NCBI RefSeq assembly: GCF_963853765.1
Contig: NC_088855.1
Span: 41,788,001-41,852,000, forward strand
Direction: 5' to 3'
Source: Magallana gigas
Lineage: Eukaryota
Length of the DNA stretch: 64,000 nt
Notes under the pieces: generated by a model
What the model saw: only the letters and a program-made list of their open reading frames with translations
Told to the model about the DNA's origin: nothing
Databases searched by the model: none
Translations under genes and position numbers: made by a program
Shown: positions 52,158 to 64,000 of the stretch, piece after piece
How positions within the stretch are numbered: position 1 is the stretch's first letter
Layout: every line of letters begins with the position of its first letter

Positions 52158-52193
<36 letters not shown>

Positions 52194-52242
52194 ATTCTGA
52201 TCACATTTTGTCCGTCGTCCGTCTGTCCGTCCGTCTGTCCGT
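52158..52242 (-). mobile_element. 3'-terminal fragment of a HINE element, abruptly truncated
   Basis: TTTTTAGCTCACCTGAGCTGAAAGCTCAAGTGAGCTATTCTGATCACATTTTGTC is essentially identical to the reverse complement of ~38008-38063. Homology stops inside the (TCCG/TCTG)n tract. Confidence 0.85.
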
Positions 52243-52479
52243 GTCAACCATAAACGTTTATGTGGCGAAAGATTTGTCCAGGACATACTTAAGAGTTTTT
52301 CAAAATTATGAGCTTAGCTCCTAACCTTCAAACTAAAATACGTTATTTAGTTGCTTCTGAGTTTAGTAACAGATTTAGCTTCATTTAAAATTAACCACAT
52401 TATCAGAGAACTCGCTTTTTTCGGACTCCGTCGGACGCTTTTTGAAGTTGTCTCCCTTAGCACATGAAACGCAATGTGT

Positions 52480-52638
52480 ACACCAGGTCACGTGATCCTT
52501 ACATCAGTGATGACGCGACCTCTAAATATAGAATGCATGAAACGTTTTGTAAACTCTCAAGCATGTTTCTGACAAAGACAAACATCCGGTTATTTTGGCG
52601 CTAATCGGAAGGATTCAAGGATATACTATTCTGTACAG
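52480..52638 (+). promoter_or_regulatory. Putative promoter and non-coding first exon inside STYXL1 intron 5
   Basis: E-box GTCACGTGAT (52487-52496), CRE-like TGACGCGA (52511-52518), local CpG enrichment and a consensus donor CAG|GTAAGT at 52639. Confidence 0.45.
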
Positions 52639-53544
52639 GTAAGTTTTTTTCTTTGTATTTAATCAAAGCACATGTTATATATATCATCGCAAATTATTAG
52701 AATTTTTTATCGGGTTTTAAATCCATTTTGTAGGCAGTAGGATGGAATAGATATTTGTGAAAACGTGTATCTTTCGACGGGGTTAATGAAGATTAAGTAA
52801 AATTTATTCATTCCCAGATAGAACATTTTACAATATATTTTCTTACTTTTTTCATGAGCATTTTAATAAATAGAAGTTCCATATGTGTTGTCAGTTTGTC
52901 GTGGTGTCAAGTGTATTCATCTGTGATGACAAACGAGATGTAAACGAAAACCAAACACCGTTAAAATTAGGACCCAGTTGATTTTAGGACCGTCTACCAT
53001 ACATTGCATAAAATTTGAGGCACCATCAATGCTGTATAATGCACTGTTAATCCATGAATAAGCTTTTAATATCGGAACTTGCCTAGACTTTGAAAAATAC
53101 GGAAGCTTTCGCGGACAATACATATTCCAGCTAAATTTAACAAATATTTCAAAAAAGAAATAAAATATTTAAAAATAAGAAGTATATGTGAAAGCAATAT
53201 TTATTCAGGTACTGTTCATTATCTTTTGAAAGAGAAATTGCAAAATATTGAATGAATGATTCTATGTTTGATAACATGTGTACACTCAGTCACATTTATT
53301 GTCGCTGGAGGCTTCTGTGAGAAATATGCTGAATAGAAATTGTTTAGCACAGGGTTTTTATAGAAAAAAATAGAATTGTCACAATTTTGAGCATACGGTA
53401 TATGCTCAGGCACCTGAAGTTATATCTTTTTCTCATAATAAACAAAAAGTATCCTATACCTAATAATACACAAGGGAGGATGGAAATTGACATATTTGGG
53501 TCATACTTTGGGATATCCCTTTTCTGATTGGTATTCTATTGGCA

Positions 53545-55380
53545 ACTCTTAATAGATAGACATTAAAAGCTCATAACTCACAGACACAATCATAAAGTGT
53601 CTTGCTCACAACTCATAATCATTAGACATTAAAAGCACACAAGTCACAGACACATTTGGCAAATTGAAGAGTATCAAATTTTAAAAGTGCGTTGTTGAAT
53701 GTTCACAACTCATAGTCGATAGACATTAAAAGCACACAACTCAAAGACACTATCATTTATCAAAGTTCAGAATAAAATTGGAAAGTGTCTTGCTCCAAAC
53801 TCATAATCAATAGACATTAAAAGCACACAACTCATGGACACAATTATTAAACAAATTGAAGAATGCAATTTAGAAGTGCCTTATTCACAACTTGTAATAG
53901 GTAGAAATTATAAGCACATAACTCCTAGACATATTTTTTAAACAAATTGAAAATACAATACAATTTTACAAGCGTCTTTTTCAAAACTCATTAACTATAG
54001 ACACTAAAAGCCCATAATTCATGAACACAATTATATAGCAAATGTACAATACAATATTTAAATGTCCTATTGGCAACTCGTAATTGGTAGACAAAAAAAT
54101 CACACAACGCACGGACATGATCATTTATCAAAGTGAAGAATACAATTTTAAAGTGTCTTGTTCACAACTCATAATCGATAGACATTAAAAGCACACAACT
54201 CACGGACACAGTTATTTAAGAAAGTGAAGAGTGCAATTTAAATGTGTCTCGTTCACAACTCATAATCAAAAGACATTAACAGCCCATAACTTATGGACAC
54301 AATCATTTATTTAAGTGAAGAATACAATTGGAAAGTGTCTTGCTCCAAACTTAAAATCATTAGACCACATAACTCATGGACACAATTTTTTAACAATGTG
54401 AAGAATGCCATTTTAAAGTGTCTTGTTCACAACTCATAATCAATAGACACTAAAAGCACATAACTCATAGACATAGTTTTTTAAACAAATTGAAAAGCGT
54501 CTTATTTAAAACTTGTTAACGTTAGACACTAAAAGCCCATAATTCATGAACACAATTATTTAGCAAAATGTACCATACAATATTAAAATGTCCTATTGGC
54601 AAATCGCAATTGATAAATAAAAACACATAAATCACAGACATGATCATTTATCAAATTGAAGAAAACAATTTAAAAGTGTCTTGTTCACAACTCATAATCG
54701 ATAGACATTAAAAGCACACAACTCACGGACACAGTTATTTACGAAAATGAAGAATGCAATTTAAAAGTGTCTCGTTCACAACTCATAATCAAAAGACATT
54801 AAAAGCCCATAACTCACAGACATGATCATTTATCAAATTGAAAAGTTTCTTGCTCACAACTCATAATCATTAGACCACACAGCTCATGGACACAATTATT
54901 TAACAAAGTGAAGAATGCAATTTAAAAGTAATTGATAGTCTATAGAAAATAAAAGCACACAACTCATGCAAACAATCATTTATCAAAATTAAGAATGAAA
55001 TTTAAAAGTGTCTTGTTCACAACTCATAATCAATAGACACTAAAAGCACATAATTCAAAGACATAGTTTTTTAAACAAATTGAAAAACGTCTTATTTAAA
55101 ACTTGTTAACGTTAGACACTAAAAGCCCATAATTCATGAACACAATTATATAGCAAATGTACCATACAATATTAAATTATCCTGTTGGCAGCTCGTAATT
55201 AATAGACAGTAAAAGCACATAACCCACGGACATGATCATTTATTAAAATGAAGAATTCAATTTAAAAGTGTCTTGTTCACAACTCATAATCAATAGACAA
55301 TAAAAGTGTCTCAATTTTTGTTAAATGTTCACAACTCATCATAGGTAGACATTAAAAGCACATAACTCGTGAACAATTTC
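53545..55380. repeat. Degenerate ~80-95-bp tandem repeat (~20 units)
   Basis: CACAACTCATAATC..TAGACA.TAAAAGCAC recurs about every 90 bp and resumes briefly at ~55780-55830. Confidence 0.85.
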
Positions 55381-55381
55381 T

Positions 55382-55760
55382 AAAACGAGGCAATCTACTG
55401 TCAATCAAGTTGATGAAACAGGATTATCAACAGTCGCGATTGAAGTCATCATTTCGTAATTAAGTTCTATTGTCAATACAAAGACTTTGTCAGCAAATAC
55501 AATATTCCGCTAAATTAAATGCTTACTTATGTTTTTCATACATATTGCTAGGTCATTATTTATTTACCGATTTGACTTTTCATTTTACCGATCATGATGA
55601 CAAAGAGCACACGGCAGGTGTGACCGGTCAGCAGAGGATGCTTACTCCTCCATGGCACCTGATCCTACCTATAATTTTTTTAGAGGTCCGTGTTTGCTCT
55701 GCTCTTGATTTGTAATTTTCATTTTGGACTACGAGTTCAATTGTTGTTCTTTATTGTTGC
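55382..55760 (+). mobile_element. 5'-truncated Penelope-like retroelement fragment (end of RT ORF plus 3' UTR)
   Basis: Degenerate reading KRGNLLSIKLMKQDYQQSRLKSSFR.KFYCQYKDFVSKYNIPLN*MLTYVFHTYC* followed by GGTGTGACCGGTCAGCAGAGGATGCTTACTCCTCC..GGCACCTGATCC, a motif recalled from mollusc Penelope-like elements. Confidence 0.55.
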
Positions 55761-57705
55761 TTTTCATGGTAGTGTCCCATTCAGAACTCACAAACAATAG
55801 ACACTAAAAGCCCATAACACATGAACAGCAACAGACACAATTGTATTCAACAAAATGTAGAATTATGAATACATTGATAGTTTTCTTTTGTATAGAAATT
55901 TTTTTCATATCATACTTTGTAGACAAAAATTGCTATAAAAAGACACATGGACCCAGTCGTTTACAAATGCGTGTGTAATGAAGTAAATTTTAAAGCCTAT
56001 ACATTTGCAAGTTATAATTTACATTTAAAATGAAATGGATTAAAATGGATAAAATACTGCACAGATGATGTGTAAAGTCCATTGATTGTGGGGTCAACAG
56101 GAAGTGTTAAGTTACACATGGCAAAAATGGATGGAGAAACTCCTGCTGGATTTATTCTTTTTTATTCTGCATATGATTATTCCCAGGCTTGCTCATTTTG
56201 CTCAGATTTTGATATTGATGTTCTAGAGATCTTCATCAATGGTTTTTGCTGTTTAACATTTTTTTGTCTCCCAGAATTTCATGCATGTAGAGCATTTTGT
56301 GTCCTTTCTGGCTTTGCAGTAGAAAAATTCTTAAAGCTTTAATAATTATTATGAAGGTAAGTTATATTAAATAGAATAATAAACAATTATATATTTTTAT
56401 GTATTATTATAGATTTACTTATTGTGTTACAAGTTTAGCGTATATGTCATGAAGCATCAGCTTTAAGATTAGAAGACAGTAAGTTGTTGTGTTCATTCTT
56501 TTGATGGAATAATGTCCGTGTATAAAGTGATATTTGGTAACCCATGACTGAAAGGAAAGGGGTAGCCATTTTGTTAGAGACAAAAATTTTAGGATGGAGA
56601 GACGAGAAGTTTTTGTTATAGGATTGTATGTTGTTTTAAGCTTAGCATTAAGAGTTCTTGTGGTTTTTTTCAATAGCAATTCAAAATTTAGTCAGTTTGG
56701 TGTACATTTAATTTTGGGAGTTTCTTTTGTAATTGATCTGATATTCTTCATAATTGCTCTGGTGTATTTCTCCATCTGGCCAAAAAGAATTTAAGGTATG
56801 TAAAACCTCATAAGATTGTCAATCATGTCATTTAAATGAGTTTCATTAACCATATGAGGTTATAAAAGCAGGTAATGCAATATTTCAACATACTGTGAAC
56901 CAACTGTTTATAAATTATAGTGAGGTTGGTAACTCAGAATTTTGTAATTGTGTTGAATATATTATATAACGTGGAATTTCTCTTTTTAAAAATTACATAT
57001 TTGAATCTAAGTAATTTCAGTTAAATTCCCATTTTTTTGTGAGGGAGAATTGAAGTCTCCCTTGAATTTTGCTCTAAGTTGTCCCTGCCACATAAATAAA
57101 TGGACTGCTATTAAATCTTAGTCCTAAAAATGTTTGAATAAGCTGCACAATATTTCTTAATAGTAAAGTATTGAAAAGAGTTATTCATTACTCATTGAGA
57201 GCATGTTGCCAAAAATGGAGGACATAACAAATTTTCTTTGGTCTGAGGTTGCATTGTTGAGTATGATATTGTTGGTGATGATTTTCATTGTGGTGATCGG
57301 TGCAATGATTTTGAGAACTGTCAGAAAATGGAACAGAATTTTTTATTCTTGGAATGAAAGACTAATGCAGTAGACATACATTTTTTTGCATTGAACATTT
57401 AATTTCCATCTGTGGTTTGCTTTAAATATTGTCACTAAAACTGCAACTGTAACAGGTATGTATGAGTCATTAAAAATTTGACATGTTGAAGATTTGTTTA
57501 ATTAAAATAGAATGTGAAAAAATCCTTCTCATTAAAAATTCAAATAAATATTTAAAAAATATAATTAGGCAATTTATTAGGATAAATCAGAGAGAGGAGA
57601 TCAAGAGAAGTAGTTAGTACATTTTACCCAAGATAAACACATAGATTGGTTGTTTCATTGTTTTGTTTGAAAATAAAAAACTATGCTTTTGGTTTATAGG
57701 TTGCA

Positions 57706-57938
57706 ATGGGAAGGAGGAAAAGGAAACCGGCATCGGGAGATTCATGTACTGCAACTGCAAAGAAGTTAATCAAAACATGTAGTACTACTGAAACTGCAAA
57801 GAAGTTAATCAAAACTGGTGATTTTGTTTGGGCAAAACTGCCTTCAACTTCCTACCTCTGGCCTGTAAAAATAGAAAAAGTGGATATTTCAGATGATCAT
57901 GAAGAATATCATGTGTATTGTAAGGCAGATACTGTAAT
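57706..57938 (+). CDS. First coding exon of a PWWP-domain protein
   Basis: Acceptor TTATAG| at 57699, ATG at 57706, donor |GTAAGT at 57939. MGRRKRKP (NLS-like)...KTGDFVWAKLPSTSYLWPVKI fits the PWWP beta1-beta2 pattern. Candidate next exons 58593-58657 and 60715-60798; upstream UTR donor at 57456. Confidence 0.7.
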
Positions 57939-59775
57939 GTAAGTTAATTAATTTTATATAATGTTTTTATTGTAAAAGAATTTATAAATATTGTCATCTT
58001 TCTTAAATTATAGTTGGTGTAAACAAGTGTCAGAATGATAAAGCATTATATATATATTCAAATAAGGATTTGCATTAAATAACTAAATAACATTCATATT
58101 TTTGAATTTTTTTTATAAAAACAATATTTCAGCCTCCTTTTAAGGTTCTCCAATCCTCAGCCTCAAAGTATATGTTTTTCATCTTAAAAATGTTATTTAT
58201 CCTTCAAACTTTATAAATGAAATAAAAAGAAATTTTTAGGTGGTATCCATGCATTTTACAAAGTTATTGCAAATTTGCCCATGATGGATATAATGAAATA
58301 AATATACAATTTGAGGGGGGAAAAAAGGTTGTACCAGTACATCGGTGGCTCGAACCCCTTTACCTATATTTAGTAGATCTCCATTGATCCACTAAGCCAA
58401 ACATTTCGTTGAATGACTGATTGTAATACTAACACTAGAAGACTAATTAAATTTTTCTATATAAAAGGCAGATTTATGGTGCGAATTAAAAAAAAATGGA
58501 TAATTTAGAGTTATCGAACATGGCTGAGGATCGGAGATCGTTAAGGTAGTTTTGTAAAATTGAGCTAGTTTCTTTTTTGTAAAATTTCTTAGATACAAGA
58601 CCAGACAGGTAGAAATATTTCTTGAAAACATGGAGATATGGAAAGCAAAAGGAGAATGTAATGAGTTAAACATACATTTAAAATGAATTGAAATTGTTGT
58701 TTGTTTCGTTTTTTTTTTTTCAATTTGGTCATCTGAGACTGACCTATTGCTATGTTTATAAGTTCATGTCGTGCATCAATCATATTATATAGCTTAAAAA
58801 TTCATATGTGTAAGCTGCTTCTTATAATCTACAAAGCAAATATTATCATATTCATGATATTGATGTGTTACATCTTTTGACAATACTTATAGAAAACTTT
58901 ATTCCTTAAATTTATGATCCATAGGCACCAAAATTTTATGTGAAAACTTTTGATTGAATGCAGGTTTTGAATTTGTATTGGCTTCTTGCTGATTTTTAGC
59001 AGACAAACTACTGTGGTTCATCAATTTTTGTTGCATCATCAATTTCCTGGATTTTGTAAAATTAGGTTTACAAATTGCAGGTCATCGTACCTTTATGCCA
59101 ATTTTATCATATTCCTCGAGTAGTACTAGTTGTAAATGTTAAAATACAAAATAATAATAATAAAAAACTCAAATTACTAGTATAGAAACATGTCATATTT
59201 CTATATGACATGTCTATATTTCTATCTTTCTATCAAATTTGCATCTGATCCATTCTTTAATGTTTTAGACTCTGATCCAGATTTGGCAGGAAAGCTGATG
59301 ACCCTAGTGTAAATCAATATCATCCAAAAATTTCAGCTAATCTATCGGTTCAAATTATCAAAAGGCAAATTTAGACAATTATCATTATGTCTCAATAAAA
59401 GAAATTGTTTTTTATCGCAAACCTTTCATGATAACAATCAAAATGGGATGCAAATAACCAATTAGCAATTTTGTAATGGATTGTCATCCCTACTTAATGG
59501 CAGATTTATATTGTGTTTATGAATTAAGCAAAGGCATTTAGTTTTGCATTAAAAACACAATAAGAAAGTTAATTCATTGCTTTGACAATTGTATGAAAAT
59601 AAAAAGCTGAGCTAGGATATGCAAGTGATTTCAGACTACATAAATTCCTTTTTATTTAATCTGAAAATACGGTATTATACTCAGGTGACTGTTCATCATT
59701 CTTTTGTTGATTTCATATGATATTTTTGATGTGTTGGTACTAATCATTTAACATTTTAACTTACATGTCATGATC

Positions 59776-60289
59776 TTAAGGTAGTCCATCCATAACTATC
59801 ATATTTCATATCTAATAGATTGCAAGTTTGATCACTAAAATCTTAGTGTGATTTTAAGGAGTTTATTAAATAACAAAGATTCACCTTTGAAATATTAAAA
59901 AAAAATTAATATTAATAACTTTATCATATGTTGAAGTTAACATTGAAGTCTATGGGAAAAATGCATTTTTAAATATATTTCTTTAGTACAAGTAATTTTC
60001 TCACGTTTCTCTTGGTAAAAAGTTGCAAATGTGTTTCCTTTCTTCGAATATGCTAAAAACTTTCATAGTTAACCATACATATTTTAAAAATGCATTTTTT
60101 AAAATTTTCCCAAAGGGCAGACAACTCTTTTAAAAAGTTTTAAGTGCAAAAAGTTCATTTAATTGACTACATACATACAACCGAGTTTGGTTTATGTCAG
60201 CCTCATAATAGCTTTAAAATACGTTTTTGATGTAGTTTAGATCAATCAAAAGCGTTAAATTTGTCTTAGTTATGGATGGACTACCTTAA
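59776..60289. mobile_element. TTAA-flanked MITE with perfect 19-bp TIRs (Kolobok-like)
   Basis: TTAA|GGTAGTCCATCCATAACTA ... TAGTTATGGATGGACTACC|TTAA. Confidence 0.85.
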
Positions 60290-60886
60290 GGCTCAACTAA
60301 GCTTTTTTGATTAAAATCAGTCTGTTGTATGTTGTCATCATTTGCATAACAATCGTCATATACTTTTATACATCATCTTCTTCAGAACCACAGAGCCAGT
60401 TTCAAATAAACTTGGCACAAAGCATCCTTGGGACCGGGTTGAAATTTATGTTAAAGTATTCTCTGGTAGTAAACGTTTTTAAAAAAGCCGGGAAATTAGA
60501 AAAAATTTGGACTGAAAAAACAAGCTTTTGTTTTCCATTTTAAGTAGGATGTTGACCTCTATTAATGCTATTAATCTGAAGAAAAAAAATAATGGATATT
60601 GAGCTTCAAATAATTGGCTATTTAAGGAATGAACTCTCCAAAACTTTTCAGATGAGTCTTCTTCAAAATGCTTACCACATGCATGAAAGGATTCAATTGA
60701 ACTTTCAATTTCAGATATTTTGCGGAAAAAAAATGCAACATTGCAAGCATTTCAAAACGATGTCAAGTGGGCCTTGGAATCTATAGAAGCACAACCAGTT
60801 GAGAATTCTGACTATGCTAACTAGGGCAATAGTTGTCGGAAATTGATATCTGATGAAGATGACTCGGTTTATATTTTCTTCTGTAG

Positions 60887-63800
60887 GCGATCACCCTCAT
60901 CAGTTAGATGTAGTAGAGTTTAATGGCAGAGAGTCATATAAAGGATCTGGTTCTGTTGATGCAGTGATTGAGTCTGTCCTTGAAGATGCATATGCAGGTG
61001 AGATATCTGACTATGCTAACTGAGGCAATAGTTGTTGGATATTGATATCTGATGAAGGTGACTCGGTTTATATCTTCTTCTGTAGGTGACCACCCTCATC
61101 AGTTAGATGTAGTAGAGTTTAATGGCAGAAAGTCATATAAAGGATCTGGTTCTGTTGATGCAGTGATTGAGTCTGTCCTTGAAGATGCACATGCAGGTGA
61201 GATATCTGACTATGCTAACTGAAGCAATAGTTGTTGGATATTGATATCTGATGAAGATGACTCGGTTTATATTTTCTTCTGTAGGCGATCACCCTCATCA
61301 GTTAGATGTAGTAGAGTTTAATGGCAGAGAGTCATATAAAGGATCTGGTTCTGTTGATGCAGTGATTGAGTCTGTCCTTGAAGATGCACATGCAGGTGAG
61401 ATATCTTACTATGCTAACTGAAGCAATAGTTGTTGGATATTGATATCTGATGAAGATGACTCGGTTTATATCTTCTTCTGTAGGTGACCACCCTCATCAG
61501 TTAGATGTAGTAGAGTTTAATGGCAGAGAGTCATATAAAGGATCTGGTTCTGTTGATGCAGTGATTGAGTCTGTCCTTGAAGATGCACATGCAGGTGAGA
61601 TATCTGACTATGCTAACTGAGGCAATAGTTGTTGGATATTGATATCTGATGAAGATGACTCGGTTTATATTTTCTTCTGTAGGTGACCACCCTCATCAGT
61701 CAGATGTAGAGTTTAATGATGGAGAGTCGGATGAAGGATTGGGTTCTGTTGATGCAGTGATTGAGTCTGTCCTTGAAGATGCACATGCAGGTGAGATATC
61801 TTACTTTGCTAACTGAGGCAATAGCTGTTGGAAATTGATATCTGATGAAGATGACTCTGTTTATATCTTCTTCTGTAGGTGCCCAATCTCATCAGTCAGC
61901 TGTAGAGTTAAATGGTGGAGAGTCAGATAAAGGATCCAGTTCTGTTGATGCAGTGATTGAGTCTCTTCTTGAAGATGCACAAAATGAAGAGTCAGATAAA
62001 GGATCACATGCAGGTGAGATTTCTGACTATGCCAACTAGTGCAATAGTTGATAGAATTTGATATCTGATGAAGATGACTGTTTATATTTTCTTCTGTAGG
62101 TGACCACCCTCATCAGTCGGATGTAGAGTTTAATGATGGAGAGTCGGATGAAGGATTGGGTTCTGTTGATGCAGTGATTGAGTCTGTCCTTGAAGATGCA
62201 CATGCAGGTGAGATATCTTACTATGCTAACTGAAGCAATAGTTGTTGCCTTGTTGGATATTGATATCTGATGAAGATGACTCTGTTTATATCTTCTTCTG
62301 TAGGTGACCACCCTCATCAGTCAGATGTAGTAGAGTTTAATGGCAGAGAGTCATATAAAGGATCTGGTTCTGTTGATGCAGTGATTGAGTCTGTCCTTGA
62401 AGATGAACATGCAGGTGAGATATCTTACTATGCTAACTAGGGCAATAATTGTTGGATATTGATATCTGGTGAAGATGACTGTGTTTATATCTTCTTCTGT
62501 AGGTGACCACCCTCATCAGTCAGATGTAGAGTTTAATGATGGAGAGTCGGATGAAGGATTGGGTTCTGTTGATGCAATGATTGAGTCTCTTCTTGAAGAT
62601 GCACATGCAGGTGAGATATCTTACTTTGCTAACTGAGGCAATAGCTGTTGGAAATTGATATCTGATGAAGATGACTCTGTTTATATCTTCTTCTGTAGGT
62701 GCCCAATCTCATCAGTCAGCTGTAGAGTTAAATGGCGGAGAGTCAGATAAAGGATCCAGTTCTGTTGATGCAGTGATTGAGTCTCTTCTTGAAGATGCAC
62801 AAAATGAAGAGTCAGATAAAGGATCACAAGCAGGTGAGAATTCTGACTGCCAACTAATGCAATAGTTGACAGAATTTGATATCTTATGAAGATGACTCTG
62901 TTTATATCTTCTTCTGTAGGTGACCAATCTCATCAGTCAGATGTAGAGTTTAATGATGGAGAGTCGGATGAAGGATTGGGTTCTGTTGATGCAGTGATTG
63001 AGTCTGTCCTTGAAGATGCACATGCAGGTGAGATATCTTACTTTGCTAACTGAAGCAATAGTTGTTGGATATTGATATCTGATGAAGATGACTCTGTTTA
63101 TATCGTCTTCTGTAGGTGACCACCCTCATCAGTCAGATGTAGAGTTTAATTTTGGAGAGGCAGATAAAGGATCTGGTTTTGTTGATGCAGTGATTGAGTC
63201 TCTTCTTGAAGATGAACATGCAGGTGAGATATCTTACTATGCTAACTAGGGCAATAGTTGTTGGAAATTGATATCTGATGAAGATGACTTTGTTTATATT
63301 TTCTTCTGTAGGTGCCCAATCTCATCAGTCAGCTGTAGAGTTAAATGGCAGAGAGTCAGATAAAGGATCCAGTTCTGTTGATGCAGTGATTGAGTCTCTT
63401 CTTGAAGATGCACAAAATGAAGAGTCAGATAAAGGATCACATGCAGGTGAGATATCTGACTATGCTAACTGAGGCAATAGTTGTTGGATATTGATATCTG
63501 ATGAAGATGACTCTGTTTATATTTTCTTCTGTAGGTGACCACCCTCATCAGTCAGATGAAGAGTTTAATGATGGAGAGTCGGATGAAGGATCTGGTTCTG
63601 TTGATGCAGTGATTGAGTCTGTCCTTGAAGATGAACATGCAGGTGAGATATCTTACTATGCTAACTGAGGCAAAAGTTGTTTGAAATTGATATCTGATGA
63701 AGATGACTCTGTTTATATCTTCTTCTGTAGGTGACCACCCTCATCAGTCAGATGTAGAGTTTAATTTTGGAGAGGCAGATAAAGGATCCAGTTGTGTTGA

Positions 63801-64000
63801 TGCAGTGATTGAGTCTCTTCTTGAAGATGAACATGCAGGTGAGATATCTGACTATGCTAACTGAGGCAATAGTTGATTGAAATTGATATCTGATGAAGAT
63901 GACTATTTATATCTTCTTCTGTAGGCGATCACCCTCATCAGTCGGATGTAGAGTTTATTGACGCAGAATCAGATAAAGGATCTGGTTCTGTTGATGCAGT
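60887..64000 (+). CDS. Array of >=16 tandem symmetric (phase 1-1) exons encoding an acidic 36-45-aa repeat
   Basis: Exons 60887-60997, 61086-61196, 61285-61395, 61484-61594, 61683-61790, 61879-62013, 62100-62207, 62304-62414, 62503-62610, 62699-62833, 62920-63027, 63116-63223, 63312-63446, 63535-63642, 63731-63838, 63925-end. Each has TTCTGTAG| and |GTGAG. Peptide e.g. GDHPHQSDVEFNDGESDEGLGSVDAVIESVLEDAHA. Linkage to the PWWP exon is inferred. Confidence 0.75.

Follow-up and report, generated by a model that had tools for sequence, protein, structure and literature searches.

A satellite-like array of spliced exons as the probable N-terminal region of a Crypton-like tyrosine-recombinase gene in Magallana gigas

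Cryptons are tyrosine-recombinase-only DNA transposons of eukaryotes (Kojima & Jurka 2011, PMC3212892; Glomhopper CryptonA, PMC13465315), and their ends carry short terminal direct repeats of 4–6 bp, which serve as recombination substrates, and no terminal inverted repeats (PMC3212892). New exons and introns can arise from internal tandem repeats (De Grassi & Ciccarelli 2009, PMC2812944; also Zhuo et al. 2007, as listed in the references of PMC3488318).

The locus described here resembles both systems. The window, a stretch of 64,000 nt of M. gigas (G000:C3:41788001-41852000, the frame for all window-extended numbering below), ends in a satellite-like array of exons. Similar to Cryptons, the gene that continues from this array encodes a tyrosine recombinase, with no reverse transcriptase found; it contains introns, is present in dispersed copies, has a patchy distribution among animals, including molluscs, and no terminal inverted repeats or long direct repeats were found at its ends, leaving its boundaries hard to define. 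The C-terminal tail of the recombinase is Myb/SANT-like, and at this position some Cryptons carry a DNA-binding domain. Unlike Cryptons, it lacks a match to the Pfam Phage_integrase and DUF3504 families, spans a unit of at least 28 kb with around 29 exons, and carries a hypervariable N-terminal tandem repeat, here made of exon-plus-intron units, which we did not find described in the Crypton literature examined. With tandem exon duplication the locus shares a minisatellite-like unit that bears both splice sites and is repeated head to tail, each copy being a symmetric exon plus an intron; copy number varies among paralogous copies, and turnover of whole units keeps the frame. It differs in that the units are very short (197 bp, with an 88-nt intron), number 17–24 per array and sit in the recombinase gene of a putative mobile element, whose relatives are intronless in this region, the roughly 20 introns being lineage-specific. 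We consider it likely that the array forms the N-terminal, repeat-coding part of a Crypton-like tyrosine-recombinase gene, carried on a recently spread unit of at least 28 kb.

Anatomy and splicing of the array

TRF detects a tandem array with a 196-bp period from position 60785 to the window end, with a unit of about 197 bp. A preliminary description had read it as a satellite in which every unit carries a splice acceptor and a donor, and both the parse of all units and RNA junctions at the predicted sites bear this out. The acceptor (TGTAG/G) and the donor (GCAG/GTGAGA) occur in every unit, and the array introns, of 88, 86 or 96 nt, are all GT-AG. Parsing on these sites gives 15 complete exons and one truncated by the window end; the complete exons measure, in order, 111, 111, 111, 111, 108, 135, 108, 111, 108, 135, 108, 108, 135, 108 and 108 nt, with the 135-nt class in units 6, 10 and 13, exactly as first described. 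They are symmetric (phase 1-1), and translation confirms that the spliced phase-1 frame is stop-free (0 stops, against 42 and 101 in the other two frames). In the unspliced array the longest open frame is at most 94 codons in any reading frame. In the assembly, the array extends 707 nt beyond the window, for a total of 19 array exons, and then passes into the terminal exon, which has an array-like start. The features of the array and its upstream exons are:

56421–57938, plus strand: exon 1, from transcript contigs; donor AAT/GTAAGT at 57938/57939; 5′ end as far as the transcripts reach
59800–60290, no strand assigned: dispersed repeat of high copy number, nested in the intron that separates exon 1 from exon A; hundreds of loci match it at about 90% identity (658 candidates at first look)
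60715–60798, plus strand: exon A, 84 nt, boundaries from transcripts; peptide in the acidic frame ILRKKNATLQAFQNDVKWALESIEAQP
60799, plus strand: splice-donor defect, T for G at intron position +1, in the C3 copy only
60799–60886, plus strand: intron 0, aligning over its full length to introns 1–15 and homologous to all array introns
60887–60997, 61086–61196, 61285–61395 and 61484–61594, plus strand: E1–E4, the 111-nt class with 88-nt introns; E1 acceptor junction seen in RNA
61683–61790, 61879–62013 and 62100–62207, plus strand: E5 (108 nt), E6 (135 nt) and E7 (108 nt); intron 6 (62014–62099) removed in raw RNA reads
62304–62414, 62503–62610, 62699–62833 and 62920–63027, plus strand: E8 (111 nt, preceded by the 96-nt intron variant), E9 (108 nt), E10 (135 nt) and E11 (108 nt)
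63116–63223, 63312–63446, 63535–63642 and 63731–63838, plus strand: E12 (108 nt), E13 (135 nt), E14 (108 nt) and E15 (108 nt); intron 11 (63028–63115) removed in raw RNA reads
63925–64000 within the window, plus strand: E16, cut by the window end (complete, 63925–64032)
beyond the window (extended locus L004), plus strand: E17–E19, then the terminal 1.55-kb exon at 64707–66255

Splicing of the array is seen both in raw polyA RNA reads and in transcript contigs. Joints in the reads, for example 62013 to 62100 and 63027 to 63116, are all GT..AG and consistent with plus-strand RNA, and the contigs are spliced at exactly the predicted array sites. Two contigs (L032 and L033) are collinear with the genome from 56421 or 56940 to 57938, then jump to 60715 and join exon 1, exon A and E1; a further RNA contig (X3) has the identical 57938-to-60715 junction, and the sequence of exon 1, exon A and E1 (P0035) comes from two runs. 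The proposed linkage of the exon at 57706 to the array thus holds at the RNA level, by way of the 84-nt exon at 60715–60798. At the other end, contig L012 begins ATGCAG/GTGACC and links eight exons spanning 64702–76245, comprising the terminal exon and seven downstream exons. L012 is the sole long transcript contig, and the large-exon ORF is split in two in it. Because units and copies are nearly identical, junction reads fit more than one of them and are not assignable to one genomic copy. Joints that skip several units or go back also occur among the reads placed, and are explained by identical unit ends and the unit order of other copies; we do not claim exon skipping from them, as they are inseparable from mapping ambiguity and from other copies.

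Over its final 14 nt or so, exon A shares homology with the 3′ end of every array exon. A tandem duplication that took in the end of exon A, an intron and the first part of the big exon would have produced the founding unit, and unequal crossing-over of whole exon-plus-intron units would have made the array grow and shrink. Gain and loss of whole units in this manner would preserve the frame and the splice sites automatically. The locus is an RNA-verified natural case of one exon-plus-intron unit multiplied into around 20 functional introns and symmetric exons. It shows concretely how tandem duplication can make introns and exons proliferate, and its four paralogous copies, with arrays of differing length, lend themselves to comparison.

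A tyrosine recombinase on a repeated unit

The final array exon continues as a 516-codon exon, followed by seven further exons, and together these encode a member of the tyrosine recombinase superfamily with a predicted Xer/Cre-like fold and a putative catalytic set. In an alignment of 18 homologues (A1), the residues R165, K214, R288, H319 and Y323 are conserved in order: R165 of the motif NRRRPGE in 17 of 17, K214 of VRGK in 14 of 15, R288 of LRKH in 13 of 14, and H319 and Y323 of HAIHY in 14 of 14 and 12 of 13, respectively. The AF2 model (P0009, pLDDT 76.9) has a two-domain fold, core-binding plus catalytic, of the Xer/Cre/lambda Int type. Tyrosine recombinases and type IB topoisomerases account for all of its best 50 Foldseek matches in the PDB (probability 0.97–1.0), and its best 30 among Swiss-Prot models are all XerC or XerD, over residues 19–343, with E values from 1.5e-5; ESM-atlas neighbours below 0.9, taken as a lead only, all belong to YR-type families. 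Searches with sequence models gave nothing comparable. Neither Phage_integrase (PF00589) nor DUF3504 (PF12012) matched P0009 or its Pecten homologue even at E ≤ 10, Pfam returned nothing above threshold for the big exon, the downstream fragments, one array exon or the longer homologues, and phmmer and the A1 profile found no recombinase among PDB sequences.

The whole gene lies within a repeated unit, of which the window holds the left part:

52158–64000, plus strand: left part of the repeated unit carrying the whole gene; the unit goes on to about 80–82.5 kb in window-extended numbering

Besides the C3 copy in the window, collinear copies lie at C5:5.19 Mb, C7:40.11 Mb and C5:25.58 Mb. On the left the young copies share one boundary, 52158 (52211 in one copy), while their right ends differ, at 80053 or about 82500. 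Their arrays comprise 17–24 units, the 3′ units being collinear and the 5′ and middle units shuffled; across the four copies all 75 array exons are 108, 111 or 135 nt long, all are flanked by AG and GT, and none has an in-frame stop. The donor that feeds the array reads CCAG/TTGAGA in C3 against CCAG/GTGAGA in C5, C7 and C5:25.58 Mb, a defect that would be expected to cause mis-splicing of the C3 copy at 60799. One C7 unit has a +3 insertion in its intron. From the shared boundaries we infer that the unit is mobile, as opposed to segmentally duplicated.

Could the unit instead be a domesticated or duplicated recombinase-derived host gene family that spread by segmental duplication, its array reflecting minisatellite instability? 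At 28 kb or more the unit far exceeds the size of a usual Crypton, its nested repeats are common to all copies, and few autonomous elements would have around 29 exons with long introns; Crypton derivatives rich in introns have, moreover, been discussed as possible domestication candidates (PMC13465315). Inverted repeats, hairpins and target-site duplications were not found at the unit ends, nor were precise termini or short terminal direct repeats identified there, and an ORF scan, of a kind that would miss multi-exon genes, found no other ORF of at least 90 aa in the unit. We nevertheless hold a non-mobile origin to be quite unlikely, because the unit has features typical of mobile elements, namely multiple copies, lesions and patchy distribution. 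The four copies occupy three chromosomes, share the same left boundary and are 95–99.9% identical; individual copies carry inactivating lesions, and one further, old copy on C1 has decayed. The wider family has more than 60 matches in the genome, including many near-identical ORF copies, and is distributed patchily across phyla.

The acidic repeat itself is absent outside oysters. A gene model in GCA_032062105.1 (P0040) was rejected as a cross-species orthologue, as it is a truncated, decayed fragment of about 2.5 units. A paper on the C. gigas satellitome (PMC8268682) makes no mention of a satellite of 196–198 bp or of exons in it. For annotation, what looks like a satellite here should be treated as probable coding sequence of a repeated element and kept apart from the host gene around it.

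Reading frame, divergence and paralogous repeats

The predicted in-frame array product of 716 aa is 25.7% D+E with a net charge of −160, in keeping with the strongly acidic repeat first described. Its core, VDAVIES[V/L]LED, is short and helix-prone, with weak AF2 support; the repeat as a whole is mostly disordered and runs straight into a Cys/His-rich region and the recombinase core. The class-A unit has the predicted tryptic peptide GSGSVDAVIESVLEDAHAGDHPHQLDVVEFNGR. Candidate roles for such a region are tethering to a host factor or to chromatin, or autoinhibition by DNA mimicry. To judge from the sequence, we infer that the acidic frame is translated, and the frame would be kept open because the recombinase lies downstream in it.

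The array had also been thought to be under selection for its protein sequence, and the suggested comparison of dN/dS and of exon with intron divergence speaks against this. Among units, p-distance is 0.095 in exons and 0.083 in introns, with a pN/pS of 0.91; variant events (10 synonymous, 44 non-synonymous) are close to the neutral expectation of 13.4 and 39.8. In the old copy, exon divergence exceeds intron divergence (0.196 versus 0.124), with a pN/pS of 0.62–0.75, so that values across tests span 0.6–0.9. The proposed asymmetry of frame-preserving indels stands in part: exon indels are indeed multiples of three (3 of 3 events), but the contrast with introns (2 of 6) involves few independent events and is not significant. 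The probability of finding no stop is 0.16 from the young variants alone and 0.02 from young and old variants combined, and none of the 5 complete array exons in the decayed copy has lost its open frame (108, 108, 99, 108 and 108 nt), with units that differ by about 20%. This is modest evidence that the frame is maintained, and what is kept in the array is the open frame and the splice sites only, not the amino-acid sequence in general. Selection would act only on an open, spliceable frame, perhaps also on a few invariant residues of the VDAVIE core.

Several of these observations would fit an array that is an untranslated spliced leader. The recombinase would then be made from the terminal exon's first in-frame Met (MDDSDESW), or off shorter transcripts, and the array would be open because one open unit was recently amplified. 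Between the stop at the junction of exon 1 and exon A and the terminal exon there is no in-frame AUG except a C3-specific Met in E9, the ORF at the 5′ end of the transcript is out of frame, pN/pS and exon divergence show no constraint, and neither the young-variant probability nor the indel asymmetry is telling. Four lines of evidence make us regard an untranslated leader as rather unlikely. First, the frame has stayed open in the decayed copy, in line with the combined probability of 0.02. Second, exon A is conserved at the amino-acid level, in the acidic frame, with a relative of 69% identity (L028/P0003). Third, in the paralogues and in P0003 the repeat region lies in one ORF with the conserved domain. 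Finally, a 2.2-kb leader with many out-of-frame AUGs would be expected to block scanning to an internal Met.

The paralogues also place the translated acidic array, our preferred reading, within a wider pattern. Their N-terminal regions carry unrelated tandem repeats: around 75 copies of TPAPSVKEHG in one case, and elsewhere a repeat of about 22 aa (GPGDVDYPQLQPDDHSC), an S/T-rich repeat of about 110 aa and one of about 25 aa (THSEDMINSQPNKERIETQVDGQQG). All of these lie within one exon, before the same conserved domain, and end at the same intron position; the repeat region of P0003 is likewise intronless. Because the paralogues differ in this way, a hypervariable repeat region is a trait of the family: long, low-complexity and of fast turnover at the N terminus of the recombinase, with the array introns specific to this lineage. 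The locus thus belongs to a clade of animal Crypton-like recombinase genes, unseen by current sequence models, that swaps its N-terminal repeat sequence wholesale between paralogues, which suggests that the enzyme of a putative mobile element has here an interface that evolves fast or is free of constraint.

The PWWP-like leader

Chromatin-tethering modules are known from integration enzymes, such as the chromodomain of chromoviral integrases and the PWWP domain of LEDGF/p75, which tethers HIV integrase. The present gene is similar in that a short, conserved PWWP-like leader exon lies upstream of the recombinase gene in several paralogues. It differs in that about 24 of the 93 PWWP profile positions are covered, below threshold, and in that transcripts put the leader ORF and the recombinase in different frames. 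By analogy, such a leader beside a recombinase suggests a chromatin-reading module that may be tied to the integration enzyme. A literature search on PWWP domains together with tyrosine-recombinase transposons found nothing relevant. The two features concerned are:

57706–57938, plus strand: ORF1, the PWWP-like leader; 117 codons once spliced, ending out of frame within array exon 1
60726–60733, plus strand: A8 run in the overlap of ORF1 with the acidic-recombinase frame

ORF1 has counterparts upstream of a paralogue and close to the old copy, in which its peptide (46% amino-acid identity), donor position and phase (2) are all conserved. On ORF1, Pfam PWWP (PF00855) gives E values of 0.025–0.084 and 13.8–15.5 bits, against a cut-off of 25.6 bits, and matches profile positions 1–24 only; a three-sequence ORF1 profile (A2) found no match, and hence no PWWP, among PDB sequences. 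Two further candidates were set aside. A second PWWP-like stretch at 58226–58384 was dropped, as it has no Pfam support, and an alternative donor, ACT/GTAATG at 57933/4, with an in-frame start MIMKNIM, is absent from all transcript contigs and unconserved in the paralogue.

The preliminary description had proposed a fusion of PWWP and acidic repeats in a host chromatin reader, its acidic tail tuned through exon duplication and its protein sequence under selection. Exon 1 is indeed spliced to the array through exon A, the motif F-W-A-K/R-L-P...W-P-V...V-Y-C-K-A-D is kept in the paralogues alongside the weak Pfam match, and the repeats are acidic with a helix-prone core. The fusion itself was not borne out: in observed transcripts ORF1 lies at +1 relative to the acidic frame, continues as IYFAEKKCNIASISKRCQVGLGIYRSTTRRSPSSVRCSRV and terminates in E1, and the PWWP resemblance, confined to about a quarter of the domain, stays below threshold and found no PDB counterpart by profile. 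Nor did a host gene emerge, as the ORF that follows the array encodes a tyrosine recombinase and lies on a unit present in four copies, the repeat is without amino-acid-level constraint and it is restricted to oysters. We judge a host PWWP reader to be very improbable, and the array more likely to be the N-terminal part of the tyrosine-recombinase gene on the unit of at least 28 kb.

The recombinase reading leaves a translational puzzle, that of a conserved frame of about 1,560 codons, running through acidic array and recombinase without an AUG of its own, next to a conserved leader ORF at +1. Were the A8 run one A shorter, ORF1 and the array would share a frame. Recoding may be needed for the recombinase to be made, through a programmed +1 frameshift or through loss of one A by polymerase slippage at A8, an idea that we put forward as doubtful. 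If true, the product would have a head resembling a chromatin reader, then an acidic array of variable copy number and the tyrosine recombinase, and targeted recombinase would be supplied at a low, tunable level. The overlap of ORF1 with the long acidic/recombinase ORF, in the +1 relation, spans about 120 nt, and the A8 run within it is the same in the four genomic copies and in two RNA contigs.

Splicing and anatomy of the array

RNA shows the exons of the array to be spliced, and the array itself belongs, as an acidic repeat region, to a Crypton-like tyrosine-recombinase gene carried on a multi-copy unit. Tandem Repeats Finder detects a repeat with a period of 196 bp that starts at 60785 and reaches the window end; it also lists higher-order periods of 398 and 419. 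Cutting the array at the proposed sites yields 15 complete exons, each 108, 111 or 135 nt long (units 6, 10 and 13 forming the 135-nt class), and introns of 86, 88 or 96 nt, all boundaries reading ...TGTAG|G at the acceptor and GCAG|GTGAGA at the donor. In the frame in which every intron falls between the first and second bases of a codon (G|GT), the spliced array has no stop; the remaining two spliced frames hold 42 and 101 stops, and the unspliced array is open for at most 94 codons in any frame. Exon lengths, splice sites, open spliced frame and 135-nt units are all as the preliminary description had them. In window-extended numbering, which continues window positions past 64000, there are 19 internal exons (E1–E19), and a twentieth acceptor at 64707 begins a 1.55-kb terminal exon. 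The predicted array peptide has 716 aa, 25.7% D+E, 3.4% K+R and a net charge of -160; an AlphaFold model of a naturally spliced fragment, of low confidence overall, has one short helix per VDAVIES[V/L]LED core.

Raw reads from two polyA, strand-specific RNA runs (L018 x = window x + 60600) contain GT..AG joints that coincide exactly with the predicted splice sites, bearing out the proposal that the exons are spliceable. Unambiguous joints include 62013->62100 (intron 6) and 63027->63116 (intron 11), in reads not assignable to one copy. In all junction reads the first mate lies on the minus strand, which in a stranded library fits plus-strand RNA. Many further joints 'skip' or 'go back' several units; because unit ends are identical and other copies have a different unit order, these are not readable as exon skipping. 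Human genes are known to contain tandem arrays that bring their own splice sites and so add exons and introns (PMC2812944; Zhuo et al. 2007, as cited in PMC3488318).

The 3′ half of every array intron (for example, 60845-60886) is open in frame with the next exon (MKMTRFIFSSVG|DHPHQ) and in another frame reads LISDEDDSV, which resembles the S/D-rich acidic part of the terminal exon. Coding sequence that became intronic may have left this trace.

The recombinase gene and its 5′ end

The terminal exon opens array-like (DQPHQSAVEFNDGESE...). An acidic stretch rich in S and D, KRKK motifs and a Cys/His-rich region follow, and the exon ends ...LLLYNRRRPGELEAL at a GT donor. The 5′ end of transcript contig L012 (Logan contig SRR11244653_87279, 2,491 nt), ATGCAG|GTGACC, is a repeat-exon 3′ end spliced to the last array acceptor.

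Exons of transcript contig L012 (window-extended positions)
64702-66255, + strand
68254-68379, + strand
70430-70558, + strand
72238-72359, + strand
72874-73071, + strand
75536-75636, + strand
75714-75774, + strand
75941-76245, + strand

The L012 product, P0009, carries the motifs RRRPGE, VRGK, LRKHCAT and LGH...HAIHY. Pfam Phage_integrase and DUF3504 gave no match to it at E<=10. With its AlphaFold model (pLDDT 76.9, from an 18-sequence alignment) as query, the best 50 Foldseek matches in the PDB are all tyrosine recombinases or type IB topoisomerases (probability 0.97-1.0), among them XerA, XerH, Cre, lambda integrase and integron integrase, and the best 30 among Swiss-Prot models are all XerC/XerD, over residues 19-343. 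Catalytic R165, K214, R288, H319 and Y323 are kept in homologues, 'uncharacterized' proteins found patchily in scallops, beetles, fish and a starfish. By its modelled fold and its catalytic residues, the protein downstream of the array is a tyrosine recombinase. The array, which had been assigned to a host chromatin reader, belongs to this gene and should be re-filed as the acidic repeat region of a Crypton-like recombinase gene.

L012 is the sole long spliced transcript contig. Its large exon differs from all four genomic copies (47 gap positions), and the ORF there is broken into 334- and 477/492-aa pieces, so a frameshift is present in one or more expressed copies or alleles.

At the 5′ end, contigs L032 and L033, from two further runs, are collinear with 56421/56940-57938, then 60715-60798 (exon A), then 60887 onwards, physically linking the exon at 57706 to the array. 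The leader ORF of this exon, ORF1 (product P0035, ...KADTV|IYFAEKKCNIASISKRCQVGLGIYRSTT|RRSPSSVRCSRV*), has 117 codons and stops in array exon 1. The acidic frame is +1 relative to ORF1, opens directly after the TAA that closes exon 1 (57936-57938) and has no AUG up to the terminal exon, except a Met in E9 specific to the window's copy. Exon A reads ILRKKNATLQAFQNDVKWALESIEA in this frame and VLRKKKITLQEFNDDIKWATEAIDS in a 69%-identity relative, a conservation that speaks for coding in the acidic frame at exon A. ORF1 is itself probably meaningful, since its PWWP-like peptide, donor and phase recur in conserved form both 5′ of a C5:49.08 Mb paralogue and close to the decayed unit copy on C1 (46% identity). 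Its identity as a PWWP domain was rejected: it scores 13.8-15.5 bits against Pfam PWWP (cut-off 25.6), covers 24 of 93 profile positions and as a profile has no PDB match. Of the proposed joining of a PWWP exon to the array, the RNA linkage stands; the in-frame fusion and the PWWP identity do not.

The overlap of ORF1 and the acidic frame holds a run of eight A (A8, 60726-60733) that is the same in four genomic copies and in two RNA contigs; deletion of one A would join the two frames. In the paralogue at G000:C5:49072001-49092000 (minus strand; L029+L030), the PWWP-like exon is in frame with a 1,505-codon ORF if the homologous acceptor is used, the two being parted by TAA AAA AAA TCA TAG, which again includes an A8 run. 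The predicted A-run junction between PWWP-like exon and long ORF is recurrent.

Copies of the unit and the recombinase family

In the 564-Mb, 29-contig assembly, C5 and C7 each carry a 100% identical match to the 1 kb that precedes the array. The window's copy, on C3 (window at G000:C3:41788001-41852000), aligns collinearly with those at C5:5.19 Mb and C7:40.11 Mb, starting at 52158 and reaching at least 76.6-82.5 kb, with 95-99.9% identity and copy-specific insertions. There is a fourth young copy at C5:25.58 Mb, and an old one at C1:26.51 Mb contains stops (75-79% identity). The array occurs at no further locus in the genome beyond these unit copies, and only three weak relatives of its peptide, all oyster-derived, turn up among 1.84 billion representative proteins. 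The unit holds no further ORF of >=90 aa and no reverse transcriptase; more than 60 paralogous matches to its conserved exon lie in the genome (25-48% identity). Segmental duplication is a possible alternative origin of the copies. The gene content fits a Crypton-like, recombinase-only element with features as in PMC3212892; Cryptons and intron-containing derivatives are already known (PMC3212892, PMC13465315).

At 60799 the window's copy reads CCAG|TTGAGA, a non-canonical donor feeding the array, and the other three young copies read CCAG|GTGAGA. Two insertions in recombinase-gene introns are present on C3 only, relative to C5 and C7: 1.1 kb at L004:3026-4138 (window-extended 67026-68138) and 1.4 kb at L005:2602-4031 (76602-78031). 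The left boundary of the shared unit (52158-52260) starts TTTTAGCTCACCTGAGCTGAAAGCTCAAGTGAGCT... and then has a CGTCCGTCTGTC microrepeat. Immediately 3′ of the last exon, relative L028 (10341-10395) and paralogue par49 have similar sequence; either a repeat common in oysters or a feature of the terminus could account for it. An upstream, apparently non-coding part (53700-54842), shared by the other copies, is a 91-bp-period tandem repeat (~9 + 2.5 copies, 72-80% matches). A ~490-bp dispersed repeat (59800-60290), with hundreds of ~90%-identical copies genome-wide, is nested in the intron between exon 1 and exon A in all unit copies. Near the right end, a tandem array with a period of ~165-170 bp by BLAST ladder (L005:6909-8155, window-extended 80909-82155) is shared with the C5 copy; the C7 match ends at 80053.

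Paralogues at 40-48% identity each have long N-terminal tandem repeats, unrelated to one another, before the same conserved domain.

N-terminal repeats of recombinase paralogues
~75 copies of TPAPSVKEHG
acidic GPGDVDYPQLQPDDHSC units, ~22 aa
S/T-rich units, ~110 aa, plus HAPDK
THSEDMINSQPNKERIETQVDGQQG units, ~25 aa

Each lies within one exon that ends at the same intron position, after ...GELEAL, and the 69%-identity relative P0003 has a different acidic repetitive N-terminus in a single ORF. A rapidly replaced low-complexity N-terminus is thus a family trait, and the ~20 array introns are specific to this lineage. In the literature we found no described recombinase-element gene with an N-terminal repeat region of exon-plus-intron units, and no description of family-wide N-terminal repeat turnover in recombinase elements.

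Origin of the array and selection on it

Intron 0 shares homology with the array introns, and the final ~14 nt of exon A with the array exon ends; this, with the array-like start of the terminal exon, suggests that a tandem duplication from the end of exon A, across the intron and into the next exon created the unit. The copies have their 3′ units in common (...FIDAESDK, FIDAESDK, NDGESDKELG, ...HENAHA); 5′ and middle units vary in number and order among four copies, with 20, 18, 24 and 17 introns. Unequal crossing-over of whole units would produce such differences, and would preserve frame and splice sites without any selection.

Selection on the protein sequence, as the preliminary description proposed, is not borne out. 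Units of the window's array differ on average by 0.095 in exons and by 0.083 in introns (mean pairwise distance); the pN/pS ratio is 0.91, with 11/8/10 variable columns at codon positions 1/2/3. Among the young copies there are 56 distinct variants over 108 exon sites versus 48 over 88 intron sites, the exon variants being S 10/N 44 against 13.4/39.8 expected under random mutation. Exons of the old copy are more diverged than its introns, both among its own units (0.196 versus 0.124) and from the young consensus (0.117 versus 0.083), with pN/pS of 0.62-0.75. For substitutions, then, exon and intron parts diverge equally, an outcome that description had named as contrary to its reading; another that it had named, a lack of spliced transcripts, is contradicted by the RNA joints. 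The exon/intron indel asymmetry that it cited is not significant (exons 3, 27, 9 nt; introns -2, -2, +8, +3, +6, -20; hand count, P ~0.12). Amino-acid constraint is not seen in the array, save at a few invariant positions of the 35-aa unit (H4, Q5, E9, D16, V22, A24, I26).

For the frame itself, there is modest evidence from sequence variation that it has been kept open and spliceable. All 75 array exons of the four young copies have 108, 111 or 135 nt, AG/GT and no in-frame stop (P(no stop) = 0.16 for young copies alone). In the old copy some splice sites are broken, and all five complete array exons (108/108/99/108/108 nt) are still open; pooling young and old variants gives P(no stop) = 0.02.
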